Assembly: GCA_004431415.1 (NCBI GenBank)
Contig: QPMI01000250.1
Coordinates: 53,875 to 117,874, forward strand
Source of the DNA: Cyanophora paradoxa CCMP329
Lineage: Eukaryota; Plantae; Glaucophyta
Reading direction: 5' to 3'
Length of the DNA: 64,000 bases
Shown: in pieces, positions 5,475-25,905 of the stretch
How positions within the stretch are numbered: the stretch's first letter is position 1
Layout of the letters: each line of letters opens with the position of its first letter
Program-made: the position numbers and the translations under genes
Notes under the pieces: generated by a model
Told to the model about the DNA's origin: nothing
Databases searched by the model: none
The model's input: only the letters and a program-made list of their open reading frames with translations

Positions 5475-5556
5475 GAGCAGGTGGCCGAGTGGTCTAAGGC
5501 GTTGGTTTTAGGCACCAATCTCCCCGGAGGCGCGGGTTCAAATCCCGTCCTGCTCA
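5475..5556 (+). tRNA. tRNA-Leu (anticodon TAG)
   Basis: Full cloverleaf: GAGCAGG/CCTGCTC-A acceptor, A-box TGGCCGAGTGG, anticodon stem TTGGT/ACCAA with loop TT-TAG-GC, long variable arm, GGTTCAAATCC B-box, TTTT Pol III terminator at 5557-5560. Confidence 0.95.
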
Positions 5557-5649
5557 TTTTCATGTTCTGGGCACTAACCACTGAGCATTTCCTTTTGGCA
5601 CCTTTTCCCGACCTTTTTGCCCTTTTCCAGGCAGTTGGGGCCATTTGCA

Positions 5650-5684
5650 TATCAGGGACTAACGTGTGCAACCCCCCCCCCCGG
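5650..5684 (+). repeat. Left terminal inverted repeat
   Basis: TATCAGGGACTAACGTGTGCAACCCCCCCCCCCGG; 15/21 identical to the reverse complement of the right end, followed by the same C-tract; preceded by TSD TTTGCA. Confidence 0.75.
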
Positions 5685-5721
5685 TATACGTCAATTCAAA
5701 CTCGGCGGCAAATTTTTGAAC

Positions 5722-8700
5722 ATGGCGGCACCGGCGGCACCCGCGGCGGGCTCCGTGCCCGCGGGAGAAATCGAACGTGTCGTGATCCACAGGAAGGGCA
5801 GCCCGGATGCGCCGCCTGTGCATTTCAAGCCGGACATGCTCAACGCCCGCCCCGTTGACGTTGTCCTGCGGCTGCTCAAGACGACTGTGTTTCAGAATCT
5901 GGACGCCGAGAACATGGAATTCGTGCTCGAGAAGCGCCACGACGGCACGTCGGAGGAGCTCGAAGACATCAGCCTCCTGTGCTCCACCTCGGGCTGGAAG
6001 ACGGGCAAGCAGGGCGTCTACTACACGGCAATGGGTGCGCGTGCTCACGCTAACCGCCGCCCGCGCTAACCGCTCGGCGCGCAGACGACCAGCCCGAGGT
6101 CGCCGCGCCGGCCGAGCCCGCCCAACGGGCGGCCACCTTCGGGGTCCGGTTTAGCGGCCGCTCCAGTCAGGGCCTTGCGGACGCGGTCGCGAGCTCGGGG
6201 CGCGGTGCGCTCGCAATCGCCGCCATGTCGATTCAAATTTTGGCGCCCAACTGACATTCAAATTTTGGCGCCACGCGCACAGGCTCGGGCGGGCCCACGA
6301 TCGTGCGCCCGCATCCTCGCGTCGCCATGCGATCCTCCTCACGCTATACGCGCAGCCGGAGGGGTTCGACCCCTCGGCAAGGTGGCCCCTCGCGCCCAGG
6401 TGACGACGAATGCGAAGGCCAAGGCCGCCGCGGCCGCGGTCACTCAGAAAGAGAAGGTCATGGCTGCGGCGGGTGCCGCGGTGAAGAGCGGAAAGGGAAT
6501 CGAGGCAGTCAAGCCTACGCCCTTCTCATTCGCGACCTACGCCCCGGCCGCGGACGCGGCCTGGAAGCCTCTCCACGACATGCTCGCGATCCTCGGGAAG
6601 AGTTCCGCACCGAGTGCGTCGCGATCCTCGGCTCGTTGCTTCCGTGATTGCGCGGGTCTTCCTTTCGAACCTGATCGCGCGTCTTCGTCGCAGTACACAT
6701 CCTGAGCGAGGAGATTTTCGTGAACTACTTCGACCCGAAGGGCTTCGAGATGGCGCGGAACATCACGAACCGCAGCGCGAACCAGCCGGAGTGGGGAACA
6801 CGCTGACTGTTGCCACGGCTGTCATCACCGAGATCGTGGATCCGAGCAACCCCGCGAAGAAGATGCATGTCGTCCCCTGGACAACATCGAGAAGATGTGG
6901 GTCATGCAGGTTAGCCGCCTAGCAGCATGCATTGCGTCCTCTTCTTCCCCATCCCACCTCTTCCTTTTTTCCTTCTTTCTCTGTGCTCACTGCATGCTTT
7001 TTGAACACCCGCAGGACCCTGTCAGCATGCAGGACTGGAACCTCTTCGTGAACAAGCACTTGGCCAAACCGACTGGCCAGCACATCATCTTCATGGGCGA
7101 ACCCACCGCCAAGATTGTCAGGGACGTGCGTGCATGCCCTTTGATTCCTCTTCTCTGGCCTCTAGAGCACACTGACCGCTTGCTTTCGAGCAGTTCGTAA
7201 ACAAGAAGGCTGAATTGGCCGCCCGCCGGAGCCGTGGTGTGGCCGACTTCCAGGAGCCCCGGTACAACGTCGTCTTCAAGCTCGGGACGTCCGGGAAGGA
7301 TCCAACGACCATCACAATCGAGATCGAAGGCATGCTTGATCCGCACCCCTACACGCAGCTCGCTGGTCTGTGCTCCTTTCTCCTTTCTTGGCTTGTGCTC
7401 CTTTCTGTAAAGGTCCCTCTTCAGTCTAACCTTAGCACCTGCTCTTCTATCTGCAGATGCATTCTCAGCGTTCATGACGAAGAAGCTGAACGCTGAGGAG
7501 CCCCTGGAAGTGTACAAGATGTTCGTCCCCAACAAGCCGCCGAAGGGCGCGGGCCGGCGGCCCAACAACTTCCAGGACGCCGTGAATGAAATCACCCCTG
7601 ACAACTTCCCAGTGTCCAGTGCGTTGTGCTCTCCTGGCACCCGATGCACCGCGCCCTTCTCTGATGCATGTGCCCCGTGCAGAGCTCACCGAGGTGATGG
7701 CCTACGAGGCGAACTGCAACTACATCGGTGTGGTGCTCACATCGATGTACTTCGAGCGGGGGTCGCAGCATGCCATCCTGCGGACGATGACTACGCCCGA
7801 AAAGGTTCTCAGACTGCCCTTCCTGCTTAGTTCCCCTCTGTCCACCGAATCTCACTCTGGTGCTGAGCAGAAATACTCCCTCAACCGCAAGGACCCGGAG
7901 CGGCTGGTCAATCCCACGTCGGGCGGCGCCCTCCTGCAGTCGTATGTCAACGGCATTGCAATGTGCCACGCCGCCATGTTCCACAAGATGTGCCCCACCG
8001 ACGTCCTCAAGCTGCGGGACGGCATGACTCGCCCGCTCTCGGTCTGTGACAGCTCAGGCTCCAACCCAACCCTTGCAGGGACTGCCTGACTCTTGCAGCA
8101 GCTCCGCATCGAGGATGCCCATCGGGAGCTCGTGAACCTGGAGCTGCGGCCGTACGTCGTCCCGGAGGACAAGCTCGAGGACGCGATGAAGGATGCCCGC
8201 AACGGTACGCCCGTTTCTGCCCTCGCCGTCCCCTGTCTCATGCTTCTGGAGCAGGGAAGTCTGCTTTCCTCGTCCATCCTTGCAGTGTTTGCGGCTACAA
8301 GCGCATCGGCAACCCGGAGCACGACGAAATTGTGGAGAAGTTCAGCAGGACCAGCAAGCACGTCTTCGTCTGCGACTGGCTCGGCTACAAGTGCTACCAG
8401 GGGCCCTGCTTCGGCGTGTGCCGGCAGGGGTCCAAGGACTTCTGCCACTGCGAGGAGGAGGACGGGCCCGTGGAGGACGTGGAACACGTGGAGAAAACGC
8501 CGGCGCCTCCGAAGCGGGGCCGGCGGTCCAAGACGGAGAAGGAGGCAGCAGCCCAGGCCCTCCCTGCGGCCCCGCCCTCCCTGACCCAAGCTCGGCTCCT
8601 CCTCTTCCGATCCCCTCCCTCTCGACACCCCGGCCGCCTCGAGCTCCCGTCCGGCGGCGGAGGGTTCGCGCAAGCGTGCCCGCACGATGAACTACGCCGT

Positions 8701-8769
8701 CCTCGCCAGCGGCGGGCTCGACCTGGAGGCCGCAAAGGAGAAGGCGCAGCAGGAGAAGGGCAGCAGTAG
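5722..8769 (+). CDS. Multi-exon cargo protein; C-terminal half resembles a divergent alpha-kinase (eEF2K/MHCK family)
   Basis: Spliced reading: YFERGSQHAILRT (cf. F-x-x-G-x-x-R-x-A-Y), AMCHAAMFHK (cf. AxxLAxxFN), LRPYV, EKFSRTSKHVFVCDWLG (cf. FSH..LLVxDLQG), C-terminal Cys/His cluster; many GT-AG introns; 1-2 apparent frameshifts. Confidence 0.5.
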
Positions 8770-9180
8770 TTGCTCTGAAGTAGCTGCTAGCTCTGCACAG
8801 CAGTAGCTGCAGATAGCCTGTGCTCTTGGTAGGATTTTATTTTCCTTCATGTCCATTCCGAGCTCTCCCGCTGGGCTCGCAACTCTATATATGTATCCAT
8901 GTGTTTGCTATCTATAGTAATGTGCTGTCTATCGCTGTGTATGTATCTATGTCGGCTGTTTATCGCTGTGTATGTATTTGTGTGCAATCTGGATTGATTT
9001 CGTATGTGTGCCTGCGCTCTCCTCTCTGCGTGCCTGGCCATGCATGCATCCCTTCAAGGTTCCCTTCCCAAGTTGACAACAACATCTCGTGTTCAGAGCA
9101 CGACTCAGCGACACGTTCACAGAGCTTCACGCGGAACAGGAAGCGCCGCGGGAGGGGAGCGACCCCCGCACGGCTAGCGC

Positions 9181-9784
9181 CTAGCGCCAGCAGTTGCGGC
9201 AGCGAGCGCCCTCCTTGTTGTACTTGGGGTCCGAGGCCCGGAGCGCCTCCTCCGAGCTGAACTCGGGCCAGAGGATCTTCCCCTTCATCTGCGCGCACCG
9301 CCTTTAGCTACTGAGTGCCTCAAAGCCGGGCACGCGAGCTGTACGCACGCGGAGGGCCGGGCACGTCGGGTTCTGGCCCGAGACCTTGGAGACCTTGTGG
9401 ATCTTGCCCGTCGACGGACTCCCGGTGTACTTCTCGTTCGGTGGAGGAGGAGATGCGTTGCGCCGAGCTTGCGCGCGGCGGGCTGCGGGGGCGCAGGGCG
9501 CTGACCTAGCTCGGCGCGGATGGCGGTTCAAAACGAGGACGCGCCACGGGCGACGGCGGCCGCGTACCTTCCTCGACTTCCGTCTTTATCGTGCGCACCT
9601 CCACCGTGAGCGCCTCCAGCTGCCGCTGGAGGTCGGCGATGAGCTCGCGTTCGGAGGGAGCGGCGCCCGCAGCGGACGCCGGCTCGGGGGCTGCTGCAGG
9701 CCGCCGGAAAGTGAACTCCTTGCCGCGAAGCGGCCCGGACTCAAAGACGCCGGCCGCGGCAGGTGCCGGGTTGCGCGAGTCCAT
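9181..9784 (-). CDS. Small coiled-coil + Ada-type Zn-binding domain protein (3 exons)
   Basis: Spliced: ...IADLQRQLEALTVEVRTIKTEVEE...YTGSPSTGKIHK...CPALRMKGKILWPEFSSEEALR...GARCRNCWR*, matching the Ada_Zn_binding pattern Y-x-G-S..G-K-x-H..C....F-x-S-x-E-A...G-x-R-x-C-x-x-C. Confidence 0.55.
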
Positions 9785-9827
9785 GGGTTTGACGGCGTCG
9801 TCAAGCCAGGGGGTACGCGTCGTTACC

Positions 9828-11807
9828 ATGCTCCCGGCTGCGGCCGCCGGTGCTCCTGCGCCGCCCGTGGCGGCTGTCGCGGCCGCGCAGTTTGAGCAGC
9901 CGGGTGAGCAGCTCCCCGACCTCATCGTAACAGCCGTGAAGGATATATCGAAGCACGGCGAGAACACCGTGTCACTGGCACCGGCGAAACTAGATGCTTT
10001 CATCGCCGAAGTGGCGGCGATCTTCGACGTTCCCGAATTCGCACGGCCCTTGCTCAAACTCTACGTGGTGCTCTGCGGCGCTGGCCACTGGGTGCCCAAC
10101 CAGCAGGTCGGCAGTTCGCCGCCCGTCGATGCTCGCCTGCTTCTGAATGCGCGCAGATATTCGACAAGCACATCCGGCAGGGAAATCTATACTACTTCAT
10201 CAGCACCAACCCCTGCGATGTGCCGAAGCTGCTCGCGGAGCAGGCGAAGTCGGCGGAGCAGCTGCACCACAGGCAGCGCGGGCGGGGCATCGGCGCCACG
10301 TCCAAGCCAAAGCGAACCCCGCAGCAGGTTCGGCCCGCGCAGACAGGCGCGCGCGGCATGTTCACTGCTGAACAAAATCGAGCAGCACACAGACCAACTC
10401 AACTTGCAGTGGATCCAGAAGACCGTGGGGCCAGCGGAAACTCTTCCTGGCAACCAAAAAACCAAGCTCTTGCTGGGGAGCGCGACGAAGTTCGTCGCCG
10501 AGAAAGCCACGAAATGTGCCCAGCAGAGGACGAAGGCTTCCTTGTCCCTCGCCGCAGATCTGTGAGCATTCTGATGGTGAACCCCGTCTGCGCTCCGCTG
10601 ACTCGTATCTGCAGGCTTTCGTGTGCCGAGATGTGCAAGCGGGAAGCCGGGGACGTTGTGTTTCCTGACGATAAGATGAACGATATGGAGAGTCTCATGA
10701 GCAAGCACGTGGTTGAGAAACAGCCGATTTCTCTGGCCGAAGCTAAACCGTTCATCGTATTCCTGGTGAATCAACAGTTCAAATCCGAGACTAAATTGCG
10801 TGCTCTCTTTATGGAGAATCTCAAAACCTCCCACAACATCGACAGCGTGGTTTGTGTCCTTCCCTTCACTCTCCTGCCCGCATCCTGATCACGGCTCACA
10901 GAAGGCAATTGCCGGGCTGGAGAGCAGGAGAATGCATCGGACGAGCCAGGGCACGTTTGTGCTTGCGCGTACTAAATTCCGTCGGGTCCGGCTGCAGCTC
11001 ACGGGTCAGCAGATGAGGAGGAGGAGGAGGAAGAGGAGGCTCGTCGCCGCACTCCAGAGGAGCGGGCCCTCCTTCTCAATGCCATGGCGGACAAAGCGTT
11101 GGCTGGAGCAGGGCGGGGCCCTTCCCCGCCTCCTGCCCTGCCTCCTGCCCCGCCTGCTGCTATACCTCCACCCCCCCCTGTGGATCTTCAGAAGGAGGAG
11201 GAGGGGGGGGGGGAAGAGGAGGACGAGGACGAGGACGAGGATGTGGCTCCTGACGGCGTCGAGGCCGATGATGGCACGTGTGAACCCGAAAGACTCCCGT
11301 CTGTATCCTAACTTTCTTCAGAATCGAAGCGATCGAAGGCGGGGGGCAGCAGCAAGGGCCCCAAGGAGAAGAGCACAGGAAGGAAGAAAAGACGAATCAC
11401 GTGCGTGTAGCCCTTCCCTTCAATTGTGTGTTCTTTTACACGTGAATGATCGAAATCGCAGCGAGACCGATGAGATCCCGCTGCCTGAAATTCGGGTTGT
11501 AGACCAGGCCGGAAGGAAGAACGTTGTGGACGTTCATTTCCAGATTCCAGCAGGCGTGTGCAAGTTGGAGGAGAAGCAGAGGCATGCAGTCATTTGGAAG
11601 CGGGTTCTGGAGAACGGGCGCAACACGATTCCACTCAAGCTCGACATGTCGACCAGGATGTGGAAAGAGAAAAAAGCCTTCAACAAGGAAGGAATACAGG
11701 TGTGGTCAGCAATAGTCGAAAGCAACGGCAATGGTGGCCTCGCCATAGTCAAAAAAAGCAAGAACAGCCGGGTCTTAGACACTAACAATCCAGATGCTAA
11801 ACCCTAG
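9828..11807 (+). CDS. Multi-exon hypothetical cargo protein with acidic tracts
   Basis: Coding-like segments (AKLDAFIAEVAAIFDVPEFARPLLKLYVV; MCKREAGDVVFPDDKMNDMESL; DEIPLPEIRVVDQAGRKNVVDVHFQIP) joined by GT-AG introns; no domain recognised. Confidence 0.55.
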
Positions 11808-11897
11808 CATGTTTCTTCAGTGCAATGCTTTCTTGTCCTTTCGTAACCACGCGTCCGGGGTTGAGGGGTGTGCAATCATCTCTGTACTCTGTACTCG

Positions 11898-12535
11898 TGA
11901 ACATCCAGAGAAAGAACTACCTTGACCAGAGACTGCAGCTAGCCGAGATGCGAGCAGCTCCAGAGAAAGAACTACCTTGACCAGAGACTGCCTAGCTATA
12001 GCCATATGCCTAGCTGCAGCTCGCGTGAGTGTCCATATGCCTAGCTGCAACTGCGGGGACGAGCGCAAGGACTCGATGGGGCGCACGGGGCTCAAGAAGA
12101 GGGGAAGCGCGGCCGATGCAGACGCGCTTGCGTGCCACGGTGCGCGCTTTCGCCACGCAGCCGTGGGCCCTTCCGCGACTCCGGTGATCGTAATGCTCCC
12201 GTCAGGCTTGCCGGAGGGCGTGCCAAAGCCGCAGCGGGACGCCACCTGCGGTATTGACGCCATCGTAAATGGCCCGTGCGGCGCCGCGGGCGGTGCACGG
12301 GCGCTGCGCCGGCGATGGATCGCAGTCTGTGTGCGTACCGTAGGCGGATGCGAGCCTCGGGCGTGCCTATTCGCAGCCCGCCGCGAGGAACAGGTGGTGT
12401 TGCCAACTGGCACGCCCGAGCGAGGCGGCGCGGGATGGGGCTGGGCGGCGCCCAGGTCACTGGCGGCTCGCTCGCGCCGAGCTCGCTGCAGGAGCGCTCG
12501 GCGGGCTCCGGGATGGCTGAGTCCGGTGTACCCGG
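11898..12535 (+). repeat. Internal inverted repeat copy A (core 12052-12535)
   Basis: Near-identical to the reverse complement of 21304-21895; directly upstream of the HTH gene. Confidence 0.9.
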
Positions 12536-12557
12536 GAGGTGTTGGGTACGCAGCGAA

Positions 12558-13332
12558 ATGGCCGCGGGTGGCGCGAGCCCGGCCCAGCCAAGCAGCATCG
12601 AGGAGGAGACTCTGCGCGGCTACGTGGACCAGAGGAAGACGGCCGCTGAGATACTGACTCTGCTAGCCGAGCAGCACGGCATCAACCTCAACAGGCGCGC
12701 TCTGCGCTCCAGGCTCCGCGAGCTTGGCCTCTCAACGAACTACGCTCTCTCTTTCAATGTCCTTTGTGTCGCCGTGCTGGAGGTTGTTAACTTAAATGGC
12801 CCCCTTTTCGGCGGCGGCATGATCCGCACGGCCCTCCGCGCCCAAGGCATCACAGCGTCGAAGTCGAGGATTCGGAAGGCCCTCGCGGTGTTCGATCCGG
12901 TGTGGCGCGAGGTCCGCGGGATCCGCGCGATCCTCCGCGAGCGAGGAATCAAAGCGTCGGAGTCATGGATTCAGCGCGTCGCCAGCGCCGCGGCCATGAA
13001 GATAGAGTGCGATCTGCCATGCTGCACTAGTATATCCCCAGTCTATCCCAATCTGGCTCACGCGTGCCTTGCCGCGGTGTGCAGGTCACACATGCCCGTG
13101 CCCTACAACCCAGCTGTGCAGGGCCGGAAGGAGCTCCGCGATCGCTTCGTCAACTACGCCCGCGCGCGCCCCCGATACAACGGGTCCGCGCCGCTGCAAT
13201 GCGTTCCGCTGTTCCGCTGAGGCGCTGCTTGCTCACAGGTACTTCGCATTTGCCTACGGCTGGACCCTCGGTCCCGACCAGCCCGAGAAAATCTACAGAC
13301 CTATAGATATGTACAGGTCAATGATGGAGTAG
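12558..13332 (+). CDS. Truncated transposase paralogue (N-terminal HTH region plus first catalytic D only; alternative start 12513)
   Basis: EEETLRGYVDQRKTAAEILTLLAEQHGINLNRRALRSRLRELGLSTNYALS..GMIRTALRAQGITASKSRIRKALAVFDP aligns with the transposase N-terminus; same intron position (YNG/gtccgcgccg); GWTLGPDQPEK corresponds to GWSVGFDQNEK, then stop. Confidence 0.8.
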
Positions 13333-13566
13333 GTGACTCGTCTGCATGTGCCCTTCGCATCCTTCACTTTGCACGTTCCTTGCTTGTGCCCTTTCATTTG
13401 TGTACAATTATTCTTTAAGCAGCTACTTTTGCTCCTTTGACACGCTGCACAAGCCACAGGGGCCGCCGGGCAAGAAAGGCAATCAATATGGACTTAAAAG
13501 CATCTGAACAGAAAAACAATGAAGCCTGAGGGGATCTCTCGGAGTTGAAGCCCTACAAAGATCTCA

Positions 13567-14429
13567 TTAAGGGCGTGCATCCAGCATCACACCGATGTAG
13601 TCGCAACCCGCTCTGTAGGCCATGATGTCCTTGAGATCTGCATCGGGCACATTTATCAGCAAAGGCGCGGCACGTCTAGGCGCAGCAAATGGAATGACCA
13701 CGCACTGTCCTTCGTGCGCACCCGCACTCCAATTCGTCGCGCATCCTCTTGCCAAGGATCTGCGAGCAGAACTAAGGCACGTGGCATCGCACTGCGAGCT
13801 CCGAGCATCGTACTGCGAAGATCGAGCTCGCCTCCTCGACCTCACGGATTCGGGCGTTCGCATCGGCCCGCGCCTTCTCAGACTTGCTCAGCTCCTCTTT
13901 CACCTCGCGGTACCTGTCGCATACGTCCTGCCGCAGAGCTGAGGCATGCTGAGCGGCCGCATGCGCATCGCACGCGCACCTTTGTCAGTCCCAGATCGAC
14001 CTCACGGATTCGGGCGTTCGCATCGGCCAGCGCCTTCTGAGACTTGCTCAGCTCCTCTTTCACCTCGCGGTACCTGTCGCATACGTCCTGCCGCAGAGCT
14101 GAGGCATGCTGAGCGGCCGCATGCGCATCGCACGCGCACCTTTGTCAGTCCCAGAATCTGCGGTCCGACGAATTCGTTCGCTCTCTCCCTGGCCTCCATC
14201 TCGGCCACCTTTCGGTGCAAAGTGTCCACCTCCGCTTGCTTATCGGCAAGCCTCTCGTTGAGGTGCTGTGGGAATTCCGAAGTTCATCAGATAGCTGGTG
14301 GCGCCCGCTACCGTCGCGCGGACCACAAAGGCAACGCACATTCAGACTGTGCTCGACGATCGTCATGACTTTCTCGTTGCAGCAAGGCCGCTCCACTTGC
14401 GTGCTGCTGTCCACCGACGCTCCCGCCAT
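13567..14429 (-). CDS. Coiled-coil hypothetical protein ending in an exon homologous to part of the alpha-kinase-like gene
   Basis: QHLNERLADKQAEVDTLHRKVAEMEARE..; last exon DLKDIMAYRAGCDYIGVMLDARP* resembles ELTEVMAYEANCNYIGVVLTS (7683-7745). Confidence 0.5.
13836..14155. repeat. 160-bp direct tandem duplication (exon + intron)
   Basis: 13836-13995 and 13996-14155 are nearly identical. Confidence 0.92.
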
Positions 14430-14509
14430 CGTCTTGGGGTAGTGTGAACCCCGAGCGGCATTCCGCGGCAGAACGCGTTCTTTGAACGATCGCGACAATC
14501 CGCGTCATC

Positions 14510-15801
14510 CGCGGCAACCGCGGCATTTTGAGTCTATCCGCGGCAACTCCGCGGCAGTTACGTGAGAATTAATTAACCACGAAATTAAAAAAGGGGGTAG
14601 TCCAAATGACGCGGCATCTTCGCGGCATTCCGCGCTACTAACAAATTCTGCGGCAATTACCGGTAGATGTCGTTAAATCCGGCAGTTGGCGACAGAACGC
14701 GGCATCCAAGGCGTCGTCGCGCTGCTTTCGCGGCTCTCGCCCGAGAATTAATTAACCACGAAATTAAAAAGTGGGGTAGTGTGATTGACGCGGTGTTTCC
14801 GCGGCACTCCGCGCTACTAGCGGCAATTAGCGGTTCTCGCGAGGTTTGTCGGCATTTTGCGGCTCTACAGAACCGCGGCGTCGCTTCGTATGTCCCGATG
14901 AGGCGCAGATCATGAGCTTCATGATCATGACGCGCGTTTCCTCCGCATCATGATGCAGGCATGTTCAGAGGAACTATATAAGTATTTTAATCATGCTTAG
15001 AACGTGTGCGCTTTTTCCACAGACCACCCTAGCTTCAGTGCTTTATGGCAATTCATGAATTGTCAGTCTGACAGTTCATCCTGTACTTTTCTGTTCGACA
15101 CATGTGTCTGTGGTCTGCATGCACAATCCCGCCTCCTCCTAAACATGATTAAAATATTTATAGAGTACCTCTGGACATGCAGGCATCATGACGCGGGAGA
15201 AAACGCGCCTCATGATCATGAAGCTCACGATCCGCGCCAGATGGCAAGCCAGAATTGACGCCGCGATTCGTATTTGCCGCGAACAACCGCAATGTACCGC
15301 GATTGTCAAATCATGCCGCGGTTAGGGAAAACTGCCGCGAAGTTGCCGCGTTATTTGGACTACCCCCCTTTTTTATTTCGTGGTTAATTAATTCTTGGGA
15401 AACCGTCGCGTAGAAAACGCGATTCCATCGCGGATGCCGCATTTTGACGCTAACTACCGAATTTGACGACGTGTGGCAGTAATTGCCGCTAGTAGCGCGG
15501 AGTGCCGCGGAAACACCGCGTCAATCACACTACCCCCACTTTTTAATTTCGTGGTTAATTAATTCTCGGGCGAGAGCCGCGAAAGCAGCGCGACGACGCC
15601 TTGGATGCCGCGTTCTGTCGCCAACTGCCGGATTTAACGACATCTACCGGTAATTGCCGCAGAATTTGTTAGTAGCGCGGAATGCCGCGAAGATGCCGCG
15701 TCATTTGGACTACCCCCCTTTTTTAATTTCGTGGTTAATTAATTCTCACGTAACTGCCGCGGAGTTGCCGCGGATAGACTCAAAATGCCGCGGTTGCCGC
15801 G
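14510..15801. repeat. 1.3-kb foldback palindrome with repeated AT-rich motif
   Basis: 14510-14829 is a near-perfect inverse of 15480-15801; inner imperfect arms ~14905-15000 vs ~15138-15235; motif GAGAATTAATTAACCACGAAATTAAAAA(A/G)..GGGTAG present 5 times. Confidence 0.92.
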
Positions 15802-16065
15802 ACACGTCGCGCGCTCACTCGCGTCACATTTCTTCCCATCCCATCAAGAGCCGCGCTCTTTCTTTTGCCATCGCATCCCGCTTCGACGCACAGTGCATGC
15901 GGTGTCGCGTTGGCGCGTGCGCAGCCGCAGGCCAGTCTGCCATCCAGAGCTAGCTGCTGGCATGAGAGAGACTGGGTTCATTTGGATGGGAGAAGAAACA
16001 GAACCGGAAAAGAGAGAAAAGGAGGTCTACAACGCCAGGATAGCGCGTGAGATACGAGAAGAGAG

Positions 16066-16979
16066 CTAGCGAGCCAGCACGCTCCAGTACAGCTGCCCGT
16101 ACGGGACGAAGATCTCCATCCCTGCTTGAGGACGCAGTCGGCGACTAGCCAGACCTGCCCGTCCTTCTCCACGCGGAAGAAGGCGTTGTTCGAGAAGCGG
16201 GGGTGAGTCCCGGGCTTATCCGCGTCATTTGCGAAGCGCGCTAGGCTCGCCTCCGGAAAGTCGGTGGCGTCGAGGACGTACGTGTGCCCGTACTTGCCTT
16301 TGAACGAGATGCTGTAGAGGCGACGCGAGGGCTCGCGAGCGAAAATCTCCAGCGCTTGAGTCTTCGTGTAGATCGTCCCGCGGTACGGGGTGATGAGGTC
16401 ACCTGGTCTGAAAACAACTGCACCACGGCGCACGCCCGGCCGCTCCACGAAGAGGCCGGTCCCGGCGCGCCAGATGCCCGACTGCTTCGGCAGAAGCCAG
16501 CCCGCGCGGCGATCGATGCCGATGGCAGCGGTGGTGCGCGGCAGACGGCCTCGCCGCGGGGTCTGCGGCAAACTTTACTCGCAGCGATACTGGCGGCACG
16601 AGCGGCAGTCGAACGAGCGCACGCTCACACCACGCGTCCTTGCCGTTACCTGCCGGCAGCGAGTGCAGCCTGGCAGTTAGCGCACAGGCGACCCACTGGC
16701 GCGCAGCGCACTCAGCGCACATACCAGTTCAGTACCTCCGGCCGAAGCGAGACGACGCAGCTGCCTATACATTTTGCTTCGGAACTGCCCACCAGCTCGA
16801 GATCCCAGCGCTGGGCTTCGGTACCGTACCCCCTGCCGGAGCACCCGCCGTCCCGTTCTCCTGCTGTGAGCTCAACGGCAAGGCTTCTGCTCAGCTCCTA
16901 CCGCGGTGCTAGCCCTCTTGTGCTAAATCACGCCCGCACGCCCCGCGCAATCTTCGGGAATTCCCGCGCTGACGCCCAT
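16066..16979 (-). CDS. SET-domain lysine methyltransferase (compact; Cys-rich N-terminus, start uncertain)
   Basis: SGIWRAGTGLF, GDLITPYRG, YVLDAT, SLARFAND, NNAFF, and after a 1-nt slip at ~16121 KQGMEIFVPYGQLYW*. Confidence 0.85.
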
Positions 16980-17024
16980 TTGGGCAGCCGTCAATACACA
17001 TAGGCGGCCTTCGGCACGGCAGAC

Positions 17025-19032
17025 ATGTCAGCGCCGGCCGAGGAACGGAAGCGGAGGCCGCGTACAGACGCGCAGACAAGCGAGCCGGGCGCGGGAAAGG
17101 CCGCGCGCAGGAATCGTGCTGCCCCGGATGCCGGCGGCCAACCGAGCTGGGGGCTAGCCAACGGCTTTTACGATCTGGATCCCGATACAGGATTGCCGTC
17201 GGCGTGCGGCACCTGGAGCAGACATGCATGATCCTCGGCGTGAAGGACACGTTCAGCAAGCAGGTGTACGATCCTTGACGGGGCAGCAAGTCAAGCGCAA
17301 CACCCAGCTTTACACAGATAGCTCGAAGCGTGTCGTTCACGTCTGCGAGATCTGCAGGATCCTCCTTTGGATCGGGGCTATCGCTGGCCGCGCGTGCGCC
17401 CCGCCGCGGTAACTCGTGCGCGGTGTTCGCTGACTCTGCCTGCAGGTGTGCTATCTCGGAATCGGTGTATTATGGGGAAAACGGAGTATGCGGGCCTCCT
17501 GTGATCACGCATATGCACACATGCGTGCAAATGCTCGCGCAAGTGCAAGCCGTTTACATGCACGTGTACAAGGACGCACCACGCGAGACGCTGAGAGATT
17601 TCCTGGTCCGGCTCGCTGCCGACGCCTTCAAGAAGGATCCGCCGCTGCGCCTGGCCGCAGCGCTCGTTGCTGTCCCTCCCGCTGCAGCCCCCCCCGCGGC
17701 AGATGCCGCGGCAGATGGGGTTGTTTCCCCCCCCGCTCCTCCTCCCTTTGCCGCACCTCCTCCCCCCGCCTCTCCCTTTGCCCCTCCCCCGCCTCTCCCT
17801 TTGCCCTCCCTCCGCCTCTCCCTTCGCCCCCCCCGCGCCTCCTTCCGTTCCTCCCCAGCCCCTCCTGCCACCCTCCTGCCTCCACCTCCCGTCCCCGCCC
17901 GCCCTGCCGTCGCCGTCTCGCCCTTTCTCGGAGGATTAGGCCTGCCCGAGCAGCAGCTCTACGCTCTGTGGCATGTCGATTCCTGTGGTCGACGTCGAGA
18001 TCGAAAATCTACACCGGCCACAACCGATAGGAATGAATGGGATGAAGGGGAGGAATGCATAGCTTCCGACAGAAGCCGGGTATGCTGCAGAATGCACAGT
18101 TGATGGCAATTGACTGACAGTTCCATGCCAGGTCGTCAGGAACTGAAGCGATGAAGATCAGCGACGCCAAGAAACCAGTACGAGAGTATGTGCGGAATGT
18201 CATTGATGACTTGGCGATGATCCCGAAGACGGCAAGATTCCACTTACTACCTCTCAAGTGCAGACAGGTAAACGTACAGTTCTTCGTTCTGTCTCAGATC
18301 AATGGTTTTGACCGACTTCTTCCGTGTGTGTCTGTGCCCTCAGGCATCTATCTTCTCATGCTTGTCAGCAGTCAATGGAGAAACCGCTGTGGCATGTGGA
18401 GAGCCCGTGCCCTTCGGCCTCCTCGACAACACGGCCTACATTCATCTGCTGGTCGACTTAGCTCGACAGGGCAAGCATGTGCTCTTTTGCTTCAACACAA
18501 ATCACAGGACACCCACAGGGCGTGAGGTTGGACACTGGTGTGCCGTGCAGACTGCTTCCGTAGATCGATGTCTGATGCAACACACAGGATTCTCGGCTAC
18601 CTCCGCAAAGAAGGACGTCAGACTGTCTGCACCTTCGCCGATTCAATGAATTGGACGAAAACATTGGGTAAGGTTGCAGATATGCTCCACTCCCATAGAG
18701 TAAGTGTGCTGGGGAACATCTACGACCACGCTGTTCAGTTTAATTGCGTCGATGTGAGTTCTTTTCTAGAGTATCTGTATTGTCTTTCCTGATGCACTTT
18801 GCTCCAGTGCGGTGTGTGGATCTGGGCTGCTGTGTACACGCTCATGTTCCCCACATGTAGCGATAGCCAGCTCAACGTGCAGGCTGCTCTCCGCTCACAG
18901 CTGCTCACAAGTAAACCAGATGGAAGTGCGAATGAGTGCTGGATCAGGCAGTGGAGGGAACGGATCCGCAAGCTAGCTCTTGTAGTTTGTGACCCTGCCC
19001 GGGATGACGAGGATCTCAAGCTTGAGCCCTGA
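17025..19032 (+). CDS. Ulp1/C48-family (SUMO/NEDD8-type) cysteine protease with Pro-rich linker
   Basis: Spliced C-terminus VLFCFNTN..GHWILGYL..FADSMN..VQFNCVDCGVW gives the His-Asp-Gln-Cys set of clan CE/C48. Confidence 0.75.
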
Positions 19033-19107
19033 ATCAAAATATTTACATTGTGCGCACAGATGCATACAAAGCCTGCGATTATCTTCTCATGCTCGCTACG
19101 GCACGTT

Positions 19108-21326
19108 CTACAGTGCGCTGCCTGTGCTGGGCAATCTTCGCGAGGGCCGCCGCCTGGCGTTGTTTCGCCTCGCGCACTCTCTTTGTGCCGACAGTGGGGC
19201 GGCGCTGACGCGCGCTGCTGTGAGCCGCTTCCGCTGTTCCCACGCCTCCTTCTGCTTCAGCTGCTCTTCGTTCTCTTCGTTCTCTGACTCCTGCTCCTCC
19301 TCTTCCGCCTCCTGCTCCTCCTCTTCCTCTTCCTCCTCCTCTTCCTCCTCCTCTTCCTCCTGCTCCTCCTGTGCACGCCGCGTTGCTTGCCGCCGCTCAT
19401 CCTTTGCACGCCGCATCGCTTGCCGCCGCTCCTCCTTCCTCCTCCTCTTCTTCTCCCTTGACTCCGAGCACTCAAGGCCTAAAAGGCATGTGTTAGGAAT
19501 GCGATGCATGAACATCCAGTATCCAGAGGCACGCACAGTACCACTTGCCCTCGGGTATGGTGGCATCCGAAAAACCAGCACATTCGACGTGCCACGCCCT
19601 GCCGCACGCCCTCCCATCGCAGATGAGGAGTTCGCCATTCAGAGAGGGATCATCCTCCGATCCGGCCAAATGGCATTTCTGGCAGCAGCAGGCGAGGCCT
19701 ACACAAAACGTTAGCGAGGTCTTGAATCGCGAATGTAATGCAAAGGACACACAGAGATATTCCATCATTTTGAATCCATTCTCGACCACGAAGTTCACAC
19801 ATTCAGGGTGGTAGGCGTTCATGCATCTCTCCCTGACGTGCTTTCGCTTGATGCACGCCTCTTCCGACCGCCCGCAGCCGCCCGGCTCGTGCTGGCAGAT
19901 GGATTCCTTGTTGTGGCAGCACAAGTAGGGTGGCTGTGGTAGTTGGGGAAGTTTTCGCCGCAGACGAGGCAACGATAAGTCCATCGCCGTCCAGGCTGCC
20001 TGCGGTAGTCTGGAGGGGGAGAGGGGTGCTTGAGACTGAGAACCTGCGCCCGCATCTACTGCCTCCGCAATGATTAAAGCCTCCGTTGCCTGAAGGCCGA
20101 CGTCATCGTGGAAGTGCTGGTTGCACTCCTTGAACTCAGCCTCGGAGATGGTCTTCACTCTCTCACCGCTGAGCCTTGCCACAGTGCGGATATCCATGCG
20201 ACTGTAAAGAGATCAGAAAGGGTACTGTCACAGGGGGTGGGTGGGGGGGGCGGGATTAGTATGTACCACTCAGGACAGGACGGCCTCCCGTGCTTCAGCA
20301 GGTCCATGATGCAGGATTCATGGAACTTGTGGGAACAGATCTTCCCCTCGCTGTCGGCCACCGTCACAGGGAGCCCTCTCTCAGGATCCTGGACTGAGCT
20401 CAAACAGACTGAGCAGGTTGCATTGATCCCGATCAGAAGATCAACAGCCTCCTTGTCCTCCTTCGAAATTGATGCACGTGCTCTGCACGTTCACGACTGT
20501 CAGCAAAAACATCTGCTATGCAGCAGCATCTGCAGACCTCAGCTCCTGTATAGCGCCCTCGGACAAGTCCATAGCCGCCATCTCGGCTAACTCCTCCTCC
20601 GTGGGGGGCAGAGAACTTCTTCAGCAGGAGCGGGCGTGGGCGGCACAGGATCGACCCTAGGGGCGCCGCACGACTGTAAGAGATTGGTACAACTGTTGTG
20701 CAGCAGCAGAGCACGCACTCGACTGGAACGAAGAACAGGAACACGGGCACACGGCCAGGCACATCCGGCGACGCAGCCGGCGCGGGTGGCGCCGCCTCCT
20801 CAGCCTTGTTTTCAGTTAGCTCTGATTCATTCCTGTACAGGTATCATCAGCGCGGATGGCGACGGATCGCGGGCAACGCACGTCGCAGTGACCGTTGCAC
20901 TAAGGGCGATCGGCTCCGGCGACGGGGCGAGGGGGAGTGCGGAGCGCAATCGTGCACGTCAACGGTCGCTTTCTGAGGCGGGCTGCAGCTGATGGCGGTG
21001 GCTGGCGCTGGCTGCTGGCTGGCGTCGACGTCTTGGTCGGCGGGCTGCGCAGCGAACAGCTGTCTGCAGGTGCTGTCCTCAACAGCTGTCTTAGCTATGA
21101 GGTCCTCGGGTGGCGCCGGCGGCTGCGGCTTCGGTCCTTCAAAGCCGCCGTTTGCCCAGTCAGCAATCGCTTCCGCGTGACGGTACTTGATCCAGTGGTT
21201 ACGCTCGGCTATATAGCTTTCACGGCGCGCCTTTTGGGGTGTGTTGAGCTGCGCCGGCGAGGCCAGACGCGGCGTGCGCATTTTCGATGTGTACCCCAAT
21301 TCTCCGGGTACACCGGACTCAGCCAT
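19108..21326 (-). CDS. RING-H2 + PHD finger protein with acidic/basic tail (alternative start 21281)
   Basis: CSVC..CSHKFHESC..CPEC (RING-H2); CQKCHLAG..ELLICDGRACGRAWHVECAG..PEGKWYC (PHD); second PHD-like motif CMNAYHPEC; poly-E tract. Confidence 0.85.
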
Positions 21327-21895
21327 CCCGGAGCCCGCCGAGCGCTCCTGCAGCGAGCTCGGCGCGAGCGAGCCGCCAGTGACCTGGGCGCCGCCCAGCC
21401 CCGCCCCGCGCCGCCTCGCTCGGGCGTGCCAGTTGGCAACACCACCTGTTCCTCGCGGCGGGCTGCGAATAGGCACGCCCGAGGCTCGCATCCGCCTACG
21501 GTACACACACAGACTGCGATCCCATCGCCGGCGCAGCGCCCGTGCACCGCCCGCGGCGCCGCACGGGCCATTTACGATGGCGTCAATACCGCAGGTGGCG
21601 TCCCGCTGCGGCTTCGGCGCGCGCTCCGGCAAGCCTGGCGGGAGCATTACGATCGCCGGAGTCGCGGAAGGGCCCACGGCTGCGTGGCGAAAGCGCGCAC
21701 GCAAGCGCGTCTGCATCGGCCGCGCTTCCCCCTCTTCTTGAGCCCCGTGCGCCCCATCGAGTCCTTGCGCTCGTCCCCGCACCTGCAGGCATTTGGAAAC
21801 TCACTCGAGCTGCAGGTATTGTCGGGGAGCTGCTCGCATCTAGGCTGGCTGCAGCCGAGGTGAAGCTTGAAGGTAGTTCTGTCTCTGGATGTTCA
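21304..21895 (-). repeat. Internal inverted repeat copy B (core 21304-21781)
   Basis: Reverse complement of 11898-12535; directly upstream of the RING-PHD gene. Confidence 0.9.
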
Positions 21896-22043
21896 TCCCG
21901 AGCTCTAGGCCTAGGTCAATGTCACTTTGCTGTATGTGGATGTTTCCATTTCCTTTCCCGCCCAGTGCGAGCAGGAGAGAGCGTTTCATTAGACATAGCC
22001 AGAGCTAGCTATATCAAGCTAGGGCTAGAGGGCCGCTAGAGGG

Positions 22044-24244
22044 CTAGCCTAGCGGGCCCGGGGCCGCGCACGAGGGATCGAAATTGTGCACATAATAAAA
22101 GAAAGCTGCACGCATTTCCTGGGGCTCCAGCAGGTACTCGTCCGGTGGGAAGAAGCCCATCCCCTGCATTGACCGGGCACGGGGCGCGTCGTTGTTGGCG
22201 GGTGCGTCGTGCACCCACTGCATCCAGCCGGGGATGGACACATCGTACAGGTGCAGGTCGGAAAGCTGCTCGTTCAGCTGCAGCATGAACAAGAAGAGCC
22301 GGGGGAGCCCTCCAAGGGGGTTGCTGGAGTACTGCTCCGCAATGCGTCCACGTACCCCCGGAGCTTCCTCATCATACTCCCGCCCGAAGTTGACCACATG
22401 CTTCCAGATCTCCTTCAAGTCCTCATTGCATTCCTTGAACATCTCGTCCCGCAGCATCCTGAGCGTGAGGAAGCTTGATAAACAATGAAGGGAGTGCCCG
22501 GGGCAGGTAATTTCACACCGGAGAGTCGTGCGGGGTTCGTCAAAGACGACGAAGTCGGGCTCAACGGGGTCCTTCATGCGGCTGTCAAGGACCGAGCCGT
22601 TGACAGAGCCGCCCCTCTGGTTGTGGATATCCTTCATTTCCGTCCACTCTGGCAGGTTGAACATCAGAGGCCGCATGTAGTTCATGTTCTCGCGCCTGCA
22701 CCCGGGCCCAGTGAGCTGGGACCAGCACAATTTAAAGAACAGGGAACAGGTGCCGCAGTGCATACCACCAGTCTGGCCTGCCGTTCTGCCCCCCCGTCTC
22801 CTTGGAGCCTGAATTCACGTGGTGGTTCCAGCTGTTCTTCGCGATGGCGAGGCCGTACTCCATCACGTACATGGTCGCCTTCGCCATGGCAAACAGCTGT
22901 TGAGGGTCGAGTCTGAATGCAAGCGGAGAATAATAAGCATGCATGCCAAGTGAATTCGAATGCACGCATGCAAATTAAGAGCTCTTAATTTGGCAAGTCT
23001 CAGCCAGAAGTAACTGATTGTAGCCTTCCAACATGTACATAGGGATGGCCATCATGGTCTGTAGCTGTCATCGACTGGCGGGTCGCACGAAGGGCACCTG
23101 TTGTACCACTCGAGCATCTCCAGCATCACAGCCGCATCCACGATGGGCTTCGTGACCTTGACATTCACCCACCTGCCCATGGAGTGTTACCGGAGAGAGC
23201 AAATACAGAAGGAATGCGTGGGGGAGAGGGCGTGTCCATCACCTCCAATTCTTCTCGACCTTCGGGTTCCGGTAGGATGGGCCCACCATGACGGCGTCGC
23301 GCAGGTCGTTGGGATCTTCGAAGTTGAGCCTCCGCCAGGGAAGGCCGGTGGTGGGGTCCGTGATGTTGCCCTTCGCAATTTCCTCGTCGATCAGCCGCTC
23401 GGTTTCCTCCAGCACGAGCGCCTTTCGGTGGCCGCGCCCCGGGGTCAGGTGCGGCGCAGGTGAGCAAGAGGAGTGGGAGGGAGCACACGTGGGCTGTCCA
23501 GGTCAGCCGGTTCTCTGCGCCGCAGTCCGAGGAGACCGTGTCGAAGACCCCGAACTCCTCCACGACCGACCTGCAGCTCTGGGGTCACGGAGCACGCAGC
23601 TGCGAGGCGTGTGCCCCTCGCGCGCACTTGTACAGTTTGTAGCCTTGTATAGTGGAGCGAGCAAGCCCGCAATGCAAGTCCAGGATGAATGTGGACGTAT
23701 TCTCCACGGCCGCGAAGATGTAGACGTTCGTGTACGGCACCGCCTTCTCGTTCTGGTCGAAACCGACACTCCAGCCGAAGAACTTCCTGCGCACAAGGCG
23801 TGCGTCAGCGCGGCGCGGCGGTGCGGCACGGGCGGCGTGGCGGCGCGGACCCGTAGAAGGTCGAGCGGTGGATGGACCTGCGCTTTTTCGCGAACTCGCC
23901 CAGGCGAACGTTGCGTCCCGTCGGATCCAGCTCCGCGAGGGCGTGCTGAATCCTAGACTTCGCCACAGTGATGCCCGCGGCCCTGAGCGCCCGCGGATCG
24001 CGTCGTAGCCGTATCCGTCGCCGCACAAAGTCGCCGCTTCTTCTACGACATCGTAAACTGCCTCCTTTGAGAGAGAGTAGTCCGTCGAGAGGTCGAGGTC
24101 GCTGAGCTTGTAGCGCAGGGCGCGCATCGAAATCTGGATTTGGTGCTCCTCGTGCAGCAGAGCCACGATCTCCCTCGCCTTTCTCTTCTGAGCCACATAC
24201 TCCTCCAGAATCTCCGGGTCGATGTAAATCTCGAAGCCGCTCAT
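22044..24244 (-). CDS. IS3/IS481-like (IS3EU-type) DDE transposase, multi-exon
   Basis: HTH N-terminus (ISMRALRYKL..LSKEAVYDVV..GYDAIR..GITVAKSRIQHALAELDPTG); catalytic D in GFDQNEK (23756-8), D in SSDCGAEN (23525-7), E in SYRNPKVEKNWR (23254-6); later SWNHH motif; one 1-nt frameshift in a G run at ~23993. Confidence 0.85.
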
Positions 24245-24796
24245 TGCGAGGCGAACCGCAATGAGCGCCCGCAGCTCCGTGCACTAGGCTATCGCTGTTT
24301 TGGCCGGCTGGGGCGGCTCTCCGGCGGTCTGCCGCCGGCTGTTCCCGCGGTCGAAAAATTCACTGCACCCCCCCTCCCTTGACGCTGTCGTCAAAACCGA
24401 GTGCTGGGCCGCGTCGGGCGCGCGCAGCATCTTCAGCGACCTAGCATCGCATCCGTGGTAGGTTTGAGCGCTGCCGGCATGCATCTGAGTGCCCGAGCTG
24501 GCGCCCGCACGCTCGACGGGCGCGCGTCCAGGGCAGCGCGCGCGCAGCCCGCCCGGCCACACGAACCACTTGTATGTATGATACAAAGACCTCTTACGCT
24601 ACTAGCTCGCCGGCGCCGCGCCCGGGCTCCTGTTCACTATGCCAGGATCGGCTGCCAGGGACTGCCTGCCTGGCCGCTGCCATGCCCGGTGCATGTGCCT
24701 ACGTATTTGTTCCACCAAGGAGCGCCCCGCTCGCCGCCCCCTGCCTTGCACCATGACCATATACAACAATCCCTCCGGGAATTGAAGCAAATGCTC

Positions 24797-24853
24797 CTGG
24801 GGGGGGTGCACACCAAGGGCCCTGACAGGGGGTGCACACCAAGGGCCCTGACA
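24797..24853 (-). repeat. Right terminal inverted repeat, tandemly duplicated (26 bp x2)
   Basis: gggggtgcacaccaagggccctgaca at 24802-24827 and 24828-24853, followed by TSD TTTGCA. Confidence 0.78.
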
Positions 24854-25905
24854 TTTGCACCAAAATTCACGCCACTCGCCCCGCCTGCAGCAATAGAAGA
24901 GGCTCTGATATCGAAGGCAGGTCGAGGCAGAGCACCTCTGCGCCTGAACGCAGCCTTCCTGCGTGGCGGCGCCCTCAACACGAAGTTGAAAGGCTGGCAG
25001 CTGGTCCCCTAGGCCTGTTCCTGTTCCGCCAACCAAGGAGGTGGTGCCGCGCTGCTGAACTGTGGATAGGCCGGCTCAGCCCCCTGGAACCACTCTCTGG
25101 GCGTGTTAGCACACACTGTTCGCATGTAAGCTGGGCTTCCAAATTGTACAAGTTGCCCTTCAGCTTGCAGCTGCAGGGGGCCGGTCGCGCGAGGTAACCG
25201 ACGAGTCGCCGGCACATGTCCTGCCTTCATCCAAGTTAGCTATATAGTGGTGCTATGATGTTCCGGTGCGCACTGACCGCGTCCTTGCGCTGCCGGGGAG
25301 GTCGAGGTCGTGCGGTGCAGTGGCCCCGATCCGACGGTTGAGCTGGCGCAGAACGACCTAGAAAGAGGGGCTGGGACGATAGGTTGCCGCTATATGCTTT
25401 GGCTCGGGTTCCTATGTCCTGTAGAGTCCTTGAGGCGGGGTATTCTGTACCCCCCAGCTCGCTGGCACAGCCTGCAGCTGGCAGTGTCTTTTACTTGCTC
25501 TCTCTCTCTAGCTGGCAGTGCGTGGCACAGCCTGGCAGTGGCGCCCCCGCGGCCGGCGGCCGCCTGGCGGCTGATCTAGAGCGGGTCGCTAGCGCTAGCG
25601 GAAAGGATCTATGCGCGCCGGTTTCCCGAAATCGATCTCGGCCGGGCCTTCACTAAGTAAGTTAAGCTTCAATTGCAAGCTTTATGATTTCGATCTGCCC
25701 CTAGGCCTGTGCGCAGGCCCAGGCTGAATTCATCTCTAGTTCTCATGGTCAGAGCCCGTATAAGGGCTCCCCCCACTGCCTAAACGACCCCGCCTCCCTG
25801 GGAGCACCTGTAGCCAATATCCGCGGGGAGGCCAATGGCAGCGCGCTGCAGTGTACATCCCACACTTGTGACCCGGAACTTGCGATATAACTTTTTGTCC
25901 ATATG

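Follow-up and report, generated by a model that had tools for sequence, protein, structure and literature searches.

Introduction

Several DNA transposons of eukaryotes carry passenger domains of the Ulp1, PHD or SET type. Ginger1 transposases, from Hydra and other hosts, have a C-terminal Ulp1 domain and in one family a PHD finger, and Mutator-like elements with Ulp1 have also been described (PMC2836005). In Phytophthora, families of the HarbingerS and MuDR type code for a histone methyltransferase with a SET domain, according to the account in PMC12730594, which cites Kojima and Jurka 2014 for it. Fungal DNA transposons with TET/JBP genes include IS3EU elements in which transposase, TET/JBP and alpha-kinase genes occur together, an arrangement that has been read as an escape from silencing (PMC12730594). 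The VANC protein of Arabidopsis VANDAL (MuDR) elements counteracts the silencing of its own family, as the same article reports from Hosaka et al. 2017. This work concerns a stretch of 64,000 nucleotides from the glaucophyte Cyanophora paradoxa CCMP329 (the window), in which three adjacent genes, the products of which are a SET-domain protein, an Ulp1-like protease and a RING-H2/PHD protein, lie together on a 19.2-kb IS3EU-like element. An earlier reading of the window, the original prediction, had taken these genes for cargo of an IS3-type element and had pointed out that Ulp1, PHD and SET domains are each known as transposon passengers, which the literature bears out (PMC2836005, PMC12730594).

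The Cyanophora element is like Ginger1 and the Mutator-like elements in being a DDE cut-and-paste transposon that brings an Ulp1-type protease and a PHD finger, the role of which is unproven in both. The Ginger1 domains form part of the transposase itself and the C48 peptidase is found by Pfam, whereas in Cyanophora they are encoded by spliced genes of their own, the protease has diverged beyond the reach of hidden Markov models (HMMs) and the PHD is coupled, unlike that of Ginger1, to a RING-H2 domain. A SET gene on a DNA transposon is shared with HarbingerS and MuDR of Phytophthora, as far as these are characterized in the article cited above; the Cyanophora element belongs to another superfamily and another host, its SET protein is a stand-alone product of 190 amino acids with NDA for NHS, and two further genes of chromatin or ubiquitin-like type accompany it. 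With the fungal IS3EU elements it shares a 6-bp target site duplication (TSD) and separate accessory genes for epigenetic marks. The target of the fungal cargo is 5-methylcytosine, whereas the Cyanophora cargo has domains of the kind that deal with histone lysines, SUMO and ubiquitin; the fungal ends are TAYGG..CCRTA, whereas the Cyanophora element ends in TA...CA and has a glaucophyte host. VANC may serve as a functional model for the trio, although in the account given by PMC12730594 it is a sequence-specific DNA-binding protein without enzyme domains, a function has been demonstrated for VANC alone, and the two systems are not homologous. Each domain is thus already known as a transposon passenger; no published IS3EU-like element was found to carry all three in separate genes, and the literature searched contained no report linking Cyanophora with IS3EU.

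Structure and transcription of the three genes

The block from 16066 to 21326 extends exactly from the stop codon of the SET gene (minus strand) to the start codon of the RING-PHD gene (minus strand), with the protease-like gene on the plus strand in between. Logan contigs from two DNA runs (two studies, Illumina-based) and two RNA-derived runs (two studies) were compared with positions 15900-21800. For all three genes, the RNA-derived contigs of both studies show strand-consistent removal of GT-AG introns, and every frameshift checked in the trio is corrected by the reads. The three genes are separate, intact, spliced and transcribed. The adjacent frames that had been placed at 16066-21326 are accordingly backed by splicing.

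Single bases are systematically missing from homopolymer runs of the window. Comparison with the contigs reveals 25 such gaps between 15900 and 19280 and a further 8 between 19460 and 21333 (33 single-base gaps in 5.3 kb), and in all listed cases the reads contain the additional base. The assembly undercalls homopolymers in 15900-21800, and probably does so over the whole window. Frameshifts seen in the window alone are therefore suspect and, unless checked against reads, are not evidence for pseudogenes. Because introns and window indels split the domains, searches of the raw open frames against Pfam and PDB gave just one weak PHD match. Proteins encoded by the window are 98-100% identical to EukProt gene models (tig...) of C. 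paradoxa.

The 5' exons of the SET gene (minus strand) and of the protease-like gene (plus strand) overlap head to head at 16725-16904, and at 19108-19280 there is a tail-to-tail overlap between the 3' untranslated region (UTR) of the protease-like gene and the final coding exon of the RING-PHD gene. Double-stranded RNA could form at these overlaps. One RNA-derived contig removes a plus-strand GT..AG intron at 21500-21593, which is antisense to the 5' region of the RING-PHD gene and lies inside an arm of the inverted repeat described below. This contig carries variant letters at 21403, 21404, 21638 and 21655, and is probably the transcript of a diverged copy or a divergent transcript.

The RING-PHD gene

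The RING-PHD gene (21326-19108, minus strand) is modeled from RNA contigs, protein model P0005 and the sequence as seven exons that encode 626 amino acids. The exons are 21326-20882, 20832-20718, 20655-20538, 20482-20267, 20201-19752, 19697-19537 and 19478-19108, the last of which encodes a K/R/E-rich tail. Four introns (20656-20717, 20483-20537, 20202-20266 and 19698-19751) are lost in the RNA contigs, and a fifth (20833-20881) is consistent with P0005. The sixth, 19479-19536, is inferred from its GT..AG ends, and its removal would complete the final C-x2-C of the PHD finger. After read-supported insertions at 19927, 20014, 20022, 20602 and 20930, the frame is uninterrupted over 626 codons. 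The exons were joined for this frame check only and were searched singly, not as the joined 626-residue model.

The RING-H2 exon (20269-20481, minus strand) encodes C-x2-C-x22-C-x-H-x2-H-x2-C-x11-C-x2-C, at residues 250-299 of the 626-residue model. The C3H2C3 ligand pattern is present, and the exon scores 29.9 bits (E 6.8e-7) against zf-RING_2 (PF13639), above the cut-off of 27.3. The PHD finger exon (19496-19696, minus strand), which receives its final C-x2-C from the next exon, scores 31.4 bits against PHD-1st_NSD, above the cut-off of 27. Because these scores exceed curated cut-offs, chance is excluded as the source of the predicted RING and PHD domains, as it is for the long spliced frames. 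Upstream, in exon 20201-19752, there is another PHD-like zinc finger. The PDB matches comprise 44 PHD chains at E <1 (best 7e-4), from PHF21A, AIRE, ING, NSD2, CHD4, DPF3 and KAT6A, and the tandem-PHD proteins among them, DPF3 and KAT6A, align over the upstream zinc finger too.

DNA and RNA-derived contigs both follow this gene as far as 20639 and 21129, beyond which their sequence is unrelated, so that short parts of the N-terminal RING-PHD exons must also occur in other genes.

The Ulp1-like protease gene

The protease-like gene (17025-19032, plus strand) has six coding exons for about 580 amino acids, as established from RNA contigs and the protein models P0006 and P0010. GT-AG joints connect exons 16987-17393, 17446-18070, ~18127-18264, 18341-18537, 18588-18753 and 18808-19032, and an upstream 5' exon ends at 16904. 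The introns 16905-16986, 17394-17445, ~18071-18126, 18265-18340, 18538-18587 and 18754-18807 are removed in both RNA-derived runs. The catalytic part of the protein is encoded by the last four exons. A whole-library HMMER search with the 55-residue catalytic exon identified P0006 (234 amino acids, the catalytic part) at 100% identity. Its cluster mate P0010 (580 amino acids) is the full-length model, with the same MSAPAEERK start as in the window.

The spliced catalytic part contains GHW-ILGYL, FADSMN and QFNCVDCGVW. In P0006 the catalytic set consists of His104 (followed by Trp), Asp123 (followed by Ser), Gln155 and Cys161, in the order H-D-Q-C and with spacings of 19, 38 and 6, and the H-D-Q-C set that had been described as intact is thus complete. 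The contexts HW, DS and Q.N..DCG were taken as typical of the Peptidase C48 family, and the spacing is presumably similar to that of yeast Ulp1. In shuffled sequences the strict pattern was found in 0 of 200,000 cases and a loose one in 0.8%, the pattern having been picked after the sequence was seen. Peptidase_C48 accounts for 25 of the 30 nearest ESM Atlas clusters (score 0.95, 184 shared features), and some of the clusters are from Nucleocytoviricota. Two lines of evidence, the motifs and the protein-language-model neighbours, support the assignment to C48, and the product is very probably a protease of clan CE.

The SET-domain gene

The SET gene (16772-16066, minus strand) has coding exons at 16772-16725, 16649-16623 and 16562-16066, and a 5' UTR exon that reaches to at least 16904. 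Both introns, 16650-16724 and 16563-16622 (minus strand), are spliced out in RNA-derived contigs. In the window as written, the SET-like frame of the main exon (16562-16066) jumps just ahead of the C-terminal GMEIFVPYGQLYW, a -1 frameshift. The DNA and RNA contigs of all four runs insert a C after 16119, which abolishes the jump. The frameshift is an assembly error, and a SET pseudogene is ruled out, since the reads mend the frame. The corrected spliced product is identical to the EukProt protein P0002 (190 amino acids). EukProt has five models of the same protein, from at least four contigs, and the frameshift artefacts differ from model to model.

The conserved motifs of SET methyltransferases include a C-terminal one of the ELxF/YDY type with the catalytic Tyr, and P0002 has the C-terminal GMEIFVPYGQLYW with a Tyr. 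SET families make up 27 of the 30 nearest ESM Atlas clusters (score 0.96), some of them from Nucleocytoviricota, and the PDB matches are weak collinear alignments to SETD8 only (E 0.55). These similarities, with a near-threshold Pfam score, point to a real but divergent SET domain, the catalytic competence of which is putative. The vSET protein of chloroviruses is a small viral SET protein, minimal and without the pre- and post-SET cysteine regions. P0002 is likewise a minimal SET, with Nucleocytoviricota SET families among its Atlas neighbours. It differs from vSET-type proteins in being the product of an intron-bearing nuclear gene on a transposon and in having no significant match to any solved SET structure.

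Of the domains originally called in the three products, RING-H2 and PHD stand above the Pfam cut-offs. The SET and Ulp1 calls also hold, although SET is below threshold and has the NDA motif, and Ulp1 is without an HMM match or a fold.

The mobile element

The trio is situated in an element of 19.2 kb, 5650-24853, the ends of which are TATCAGGGACTAACGTGTGCAACCCCC... and ...GGGGGTGCACACCAAGGGCCCTGACA. A perfect 6-bp TSD, TTTGCA, is found directly outside the inverted ends, at 5644-5649 and 24854-24859. The limits given originally, 5644 and 24859, located the element but include the TSD. The inverted ends, TATCAGGGACTAACGTGTGCAACCCCC and the reverse complement of TGTCAGGGCCCTTGGTGTGCACCCCC, are imperfect, with 19 of 26 bases alike. 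The sequence expected of the empty site is GGGGCCA-TTTGCA-CCAAAATTC. At the right end the 26-nucleotide unit (GGGGGTGCACACCAAGGGCCCTGACA) occurs twice in tandem at 24802-24853, and the left end has one diverged copy; these units are possible binding sites of the transposase.

IS3EU elements are recognized by a 6-bp TSD and have TA..TA termini, with TG..CA found occasionally in GingerRoot, and the criterion for IS3EU and GingerRoot is an IS3-related DDD/E transposase without an HHCC zinc finger (PMC10045372). The DDE-type transposase gene of the Cyanophora element (22050-24244, minus strand) is spliced and is broken by window indels. Its N-terminus has an IS3-like helix-turn-helix (HTH) with weak matches to Clr5 and HTH_21, both under the cut-offs. 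Two Asp motifs of the sort usual in integrase-like DDE enzymes were identified by eye: the first is WSVGFDQNEK...FAAVENTS and the second is SSDCGAEN, which is the sole [ST]D.G.EN motif of the window. An HTH-only paralogue of the transposase (12513-13220, plus strand) is 43% identical over 77 amino acids (BLASTP E 5e-16) and also has weak Clr5 and HTH_21 matches; no DDE motif follows downstream of it. The trio sits between this gene and the DDE transposase. The IS3-type label is consistent with the TSD, the inverted ends, the IS3-like HTH and the Asp motifs; the TA...CA termini and the missing rve match considered in the Discussion weaken it. These results support the view that the trio is cargo of the element.

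Inverted repeat arms of 97-99% identity are found at 12045-12535 and at 21304-21788 (minus strand). The RING-PHD gene has its first 23 coding bases (MAESGVPG), its 5' UTR and the region upstream of them within the right arm. By way of this repeat, the RING-PHD gene and the HTH-only gene have a common upstream region and their first eight codons in common. In the contig graph there is a branch point exactly at 21304, from which one path leads to the left-arm continuation. In short-read contigs a third continuation branches at 21344, and further genome sequences therefore reuse this upstream module. The protein model P0005, from contig tig00020553, fuses the C-terminal region of the transposase to the N-terminal region of the RING-PHD protein, so the transposase/RING-PHD neighbourhood recurs elsewhere.

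The window is GC-rich and eukaryotic, with a GC content of 0.6 at the trio region and 0.81 at 29-40 kb. Within the trio the GC content ranges from 0.48 to 0.66, far under that of the 0.81 block and near that of the adjoining 25-29 kb, and base composition over the trio and these neighbouring blocks does not set the element apart from the host. The CpG observed/expected ratio over the element is ~1.0, and a methylation-decay signal is absent there.

A nested palindromic block is located in the middle of the element at 14510-15801. Its arms, 14510-14829 and 15314-15801, are up to 100% complementary and have AT-rich TTAATTAA cores. The left end of the element lies some 90 bp from a tRNA-Leu gene (5475-5556). 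At 50700-64000, up to the end of the window, there is a tandem satellite of at least 27 units of ~478 bp, which differ mostly in homopolymer length. A Polinton-like element was considered and rejected, as the larger frames gave no polymerase, capsid or ATPase signal.

Copy number and relatives

The original prediction had raised the possibilities that the genes are absent from other copies of the element or were recently captured from the host. They are not absent from other copies. The contigs of the trio have a depth of 333-347, against 53-58 in three unrelated contigs of the same run, a ratio of ~6. Gene models of the SET protein number five on at least four contigs, and two protease models and one RING-PHD model are present on further contigs. 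These data suggest roughly six copies of the element, within a likely range of about 5-8 that are nearly identical. In two DNA studies the contigs run without branches across 15900-19280 and 19460-21333, where no base is substituted. It follows that the trio is the same in every copy and that the burst behind the copies was recent.

Among 5.8 billion proteins, no other protein passes E 0.01 with the SET query and that from the RING-PHD N-terminus, or E 1 with the protease query, within the length limits of the search. A length-free HMMER search with the 55-residue protease exon retrieved the exon's own protein and three spurious bacterial proteins with Ig repeats only. No relatives of the SET protein or the protease were found in IMG/VR or in JGI metagenomes, a tblastn search against plasmids gave no match, and P0002 had no record in an exact search on contigs. 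As for capture from the host, no near-identical host protein was found by a word search limited in length. This is weak evidence that the trio genes may not be fresh copies of host genes visible to these searches.

Discussion

The favoured explanation is that the trio forms the accessory block of a young, multicopy IS3EU-like DNA transposon of ~19.2 kb, with proteins that would act on host chromatin and on the SUMO and ubiquitin systems to the benefit of the element. Taken as a whole this is reasonably probable. Its structural part, taken alone, can be held with considerable confidence, and the specific role in counter-silencing is tentative. In this scheme the PHD fingers would bind histone H3 tails and so anchor the RING ligase there; the protease would remove SUMO-type modifiers from silencing factors or from proteins of the element, and the lysine methylated by the SET protein would belong to a histone or to some other protein. 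Repeats of C. paradoxa are highly CpG-methylated and its methylated genes are mostly silent (PMC12344493). Because of this heavy methylation of repeats, counter-silencing would be the preferred function and the choice of target sites the second option.

Four considerations favour a role in chromatin that serves the element. The domains have a common logic: a RING ligase is combined with a PHD reader, and a SET writer and a SUMO-type protease accompany it. DNA transposons with epigenetic cargo have precedents, IS3EU among them (PMC12730594, PMC2836005). The element is young and transcribed, though methylated genes are silent in C. paradoxa. Finally, one cargo gene has been rewired onto the element's own upstream module. 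A more ambitious version holds that the trio is a self-contained counter-silencing module, in which the PHD-guided RING ligase, the SUMO-type protease and the lysine methyltransferase would act together to remove or overwrite the SUMO-dependent heterochromatin of the transposon that encodes them. In its parts list the trio would then be a transposon-borne mirror of the animal silencing axis of KAP1 (RING and PHD), SETDB1 (SET) and SUMO. Such a module is doubtful; if true, it would explain the transcription of a young 19-kb element in a genome that methylates most of its repeats.

Several observations weigh against the favoured explanation. The termini are TA...CA (left TATCAGGG..., right ...CCCTGACA), and TA..TA is expected for IS3EU; the lack of a Pfam rve match for the transposase also weakens this assignment. 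The figure of roughly six copies comes from a rough depth ratio and from gene models of one error-prone assembly. Since the copies are identical over the trio, dN/dS is uninformative and purifying selection cannot be measured, and the RNA contigs attest to the presence of transcripts, neither to their level nor to protein. On P0002, Pfam SET (PF00856) scores 22.1 bits (E 2e-4, model positions 10-105 of 105) and narrowly misses its gathering threshold of 22.4. In the weak collinear SETD8 alignment, NDA stands where the cofactor-pocket motif NHS is usual, and the SET domain may be inactive. P0006, P0010 and the single exons of the protease match no Pfam family, PF02902 included, at E up to 10, and the protease-like protein has no PDB, PHROG or NCBIfam match to a protease. 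The AlphaFold check that had been proposed for the spliced SET and protease products was run with AlphaFold2 without an alignment, in the case of P0002 because no homologues for one were found. It gave a pLDDT of ~35 and no fold (P0002, 35.6, failed to fold; P0006, 35.3, no usable fold). The role in chromatin is itself putative.

The genes could serve transposition instead, with the protease and the RING ligase regulating the transposase or repair at excision and insertion sites, and with the PHD and SET proteins only helping to recruit this activity. Bao et al. 2010 proposed a role of this SUMO/ubiquitin type for the Ulp1 and OTU domains of Ginger1 (PMC2836005), and the upstream region common to the RING-PHD gene and the transposase-derived HTH gene suggests co-regulation with the transposition machinery. 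However, the domains here are encoded apart from the transposase, in genes of their own, and chromatin is the usual target of PHD fingers and SET domains; a role in transposition is considered unlikely. It is distinctly improbable that the genes are neutral hitchhikers, picked up once, amplified in the recent burst and expressed through an active element without benefit to it. The identical copies, which give no sign of ongoing selection, and the SET protein, with its unusual NDA motif and sub-threshold scores, are in keeping with this idea. Yet the long multi-intron frames are all intact (190, ~580 and 626 codons), no catalytic or zinc-binding residue is missing, and the upstream module of the element has been taken over by one of the genes. 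In addition, the proteins are remote from all database proteins, which speaks for long separate evolution and against a recent capture.

An origin of the trio outside the transposon, either as an endogenised fragment of a giant virus or other virus or as a segmentally duplicated host cluster that came to lie between transposon-like sequences by chance, is highly improbable. Nucleocytoviricota families are among the nearest Atlas clusters of both the SET protein and the protease, and giant-virus insertions have been reported in C. paradoxa (PMC12344493). Against this origin, the trio lies within one TSD-flanked unit, and the adjacency of transposase and RING-PHD is also found on tig00020553. 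Further points against it are the spliceosomal introns in all three genes, the absence of IMG/VR relatives of the SET protein and the protease, and the lack of any polymerase, capsid or packaging gene detected in the larger open frames of the element.

To our knowledge, few transposons encode epigenetic enzymes of their own, and most cases involve a single gene, as with VANC, TET/JBP and the SET genes of oomycete elements. On the Cyanophora element, which is young and multicopy, writer-like, reader-plus-ligase and de-modifier-like genes occur together, each expressed as a gene of its own. Its host belongs to the glaucophytes, which branch near the base of the Archaeplastida. Even if the genes should prove inert, the element is an example of how large IS3EU elements accumulate cargo and rewire it through a shared upstream module. 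Methylome data and culture strains of C. paradoxa exist, so that the resistance of a DNA transposon to silencing by way of histone, SUMO and ubiquitin chemistry would be directly testable in this organism.

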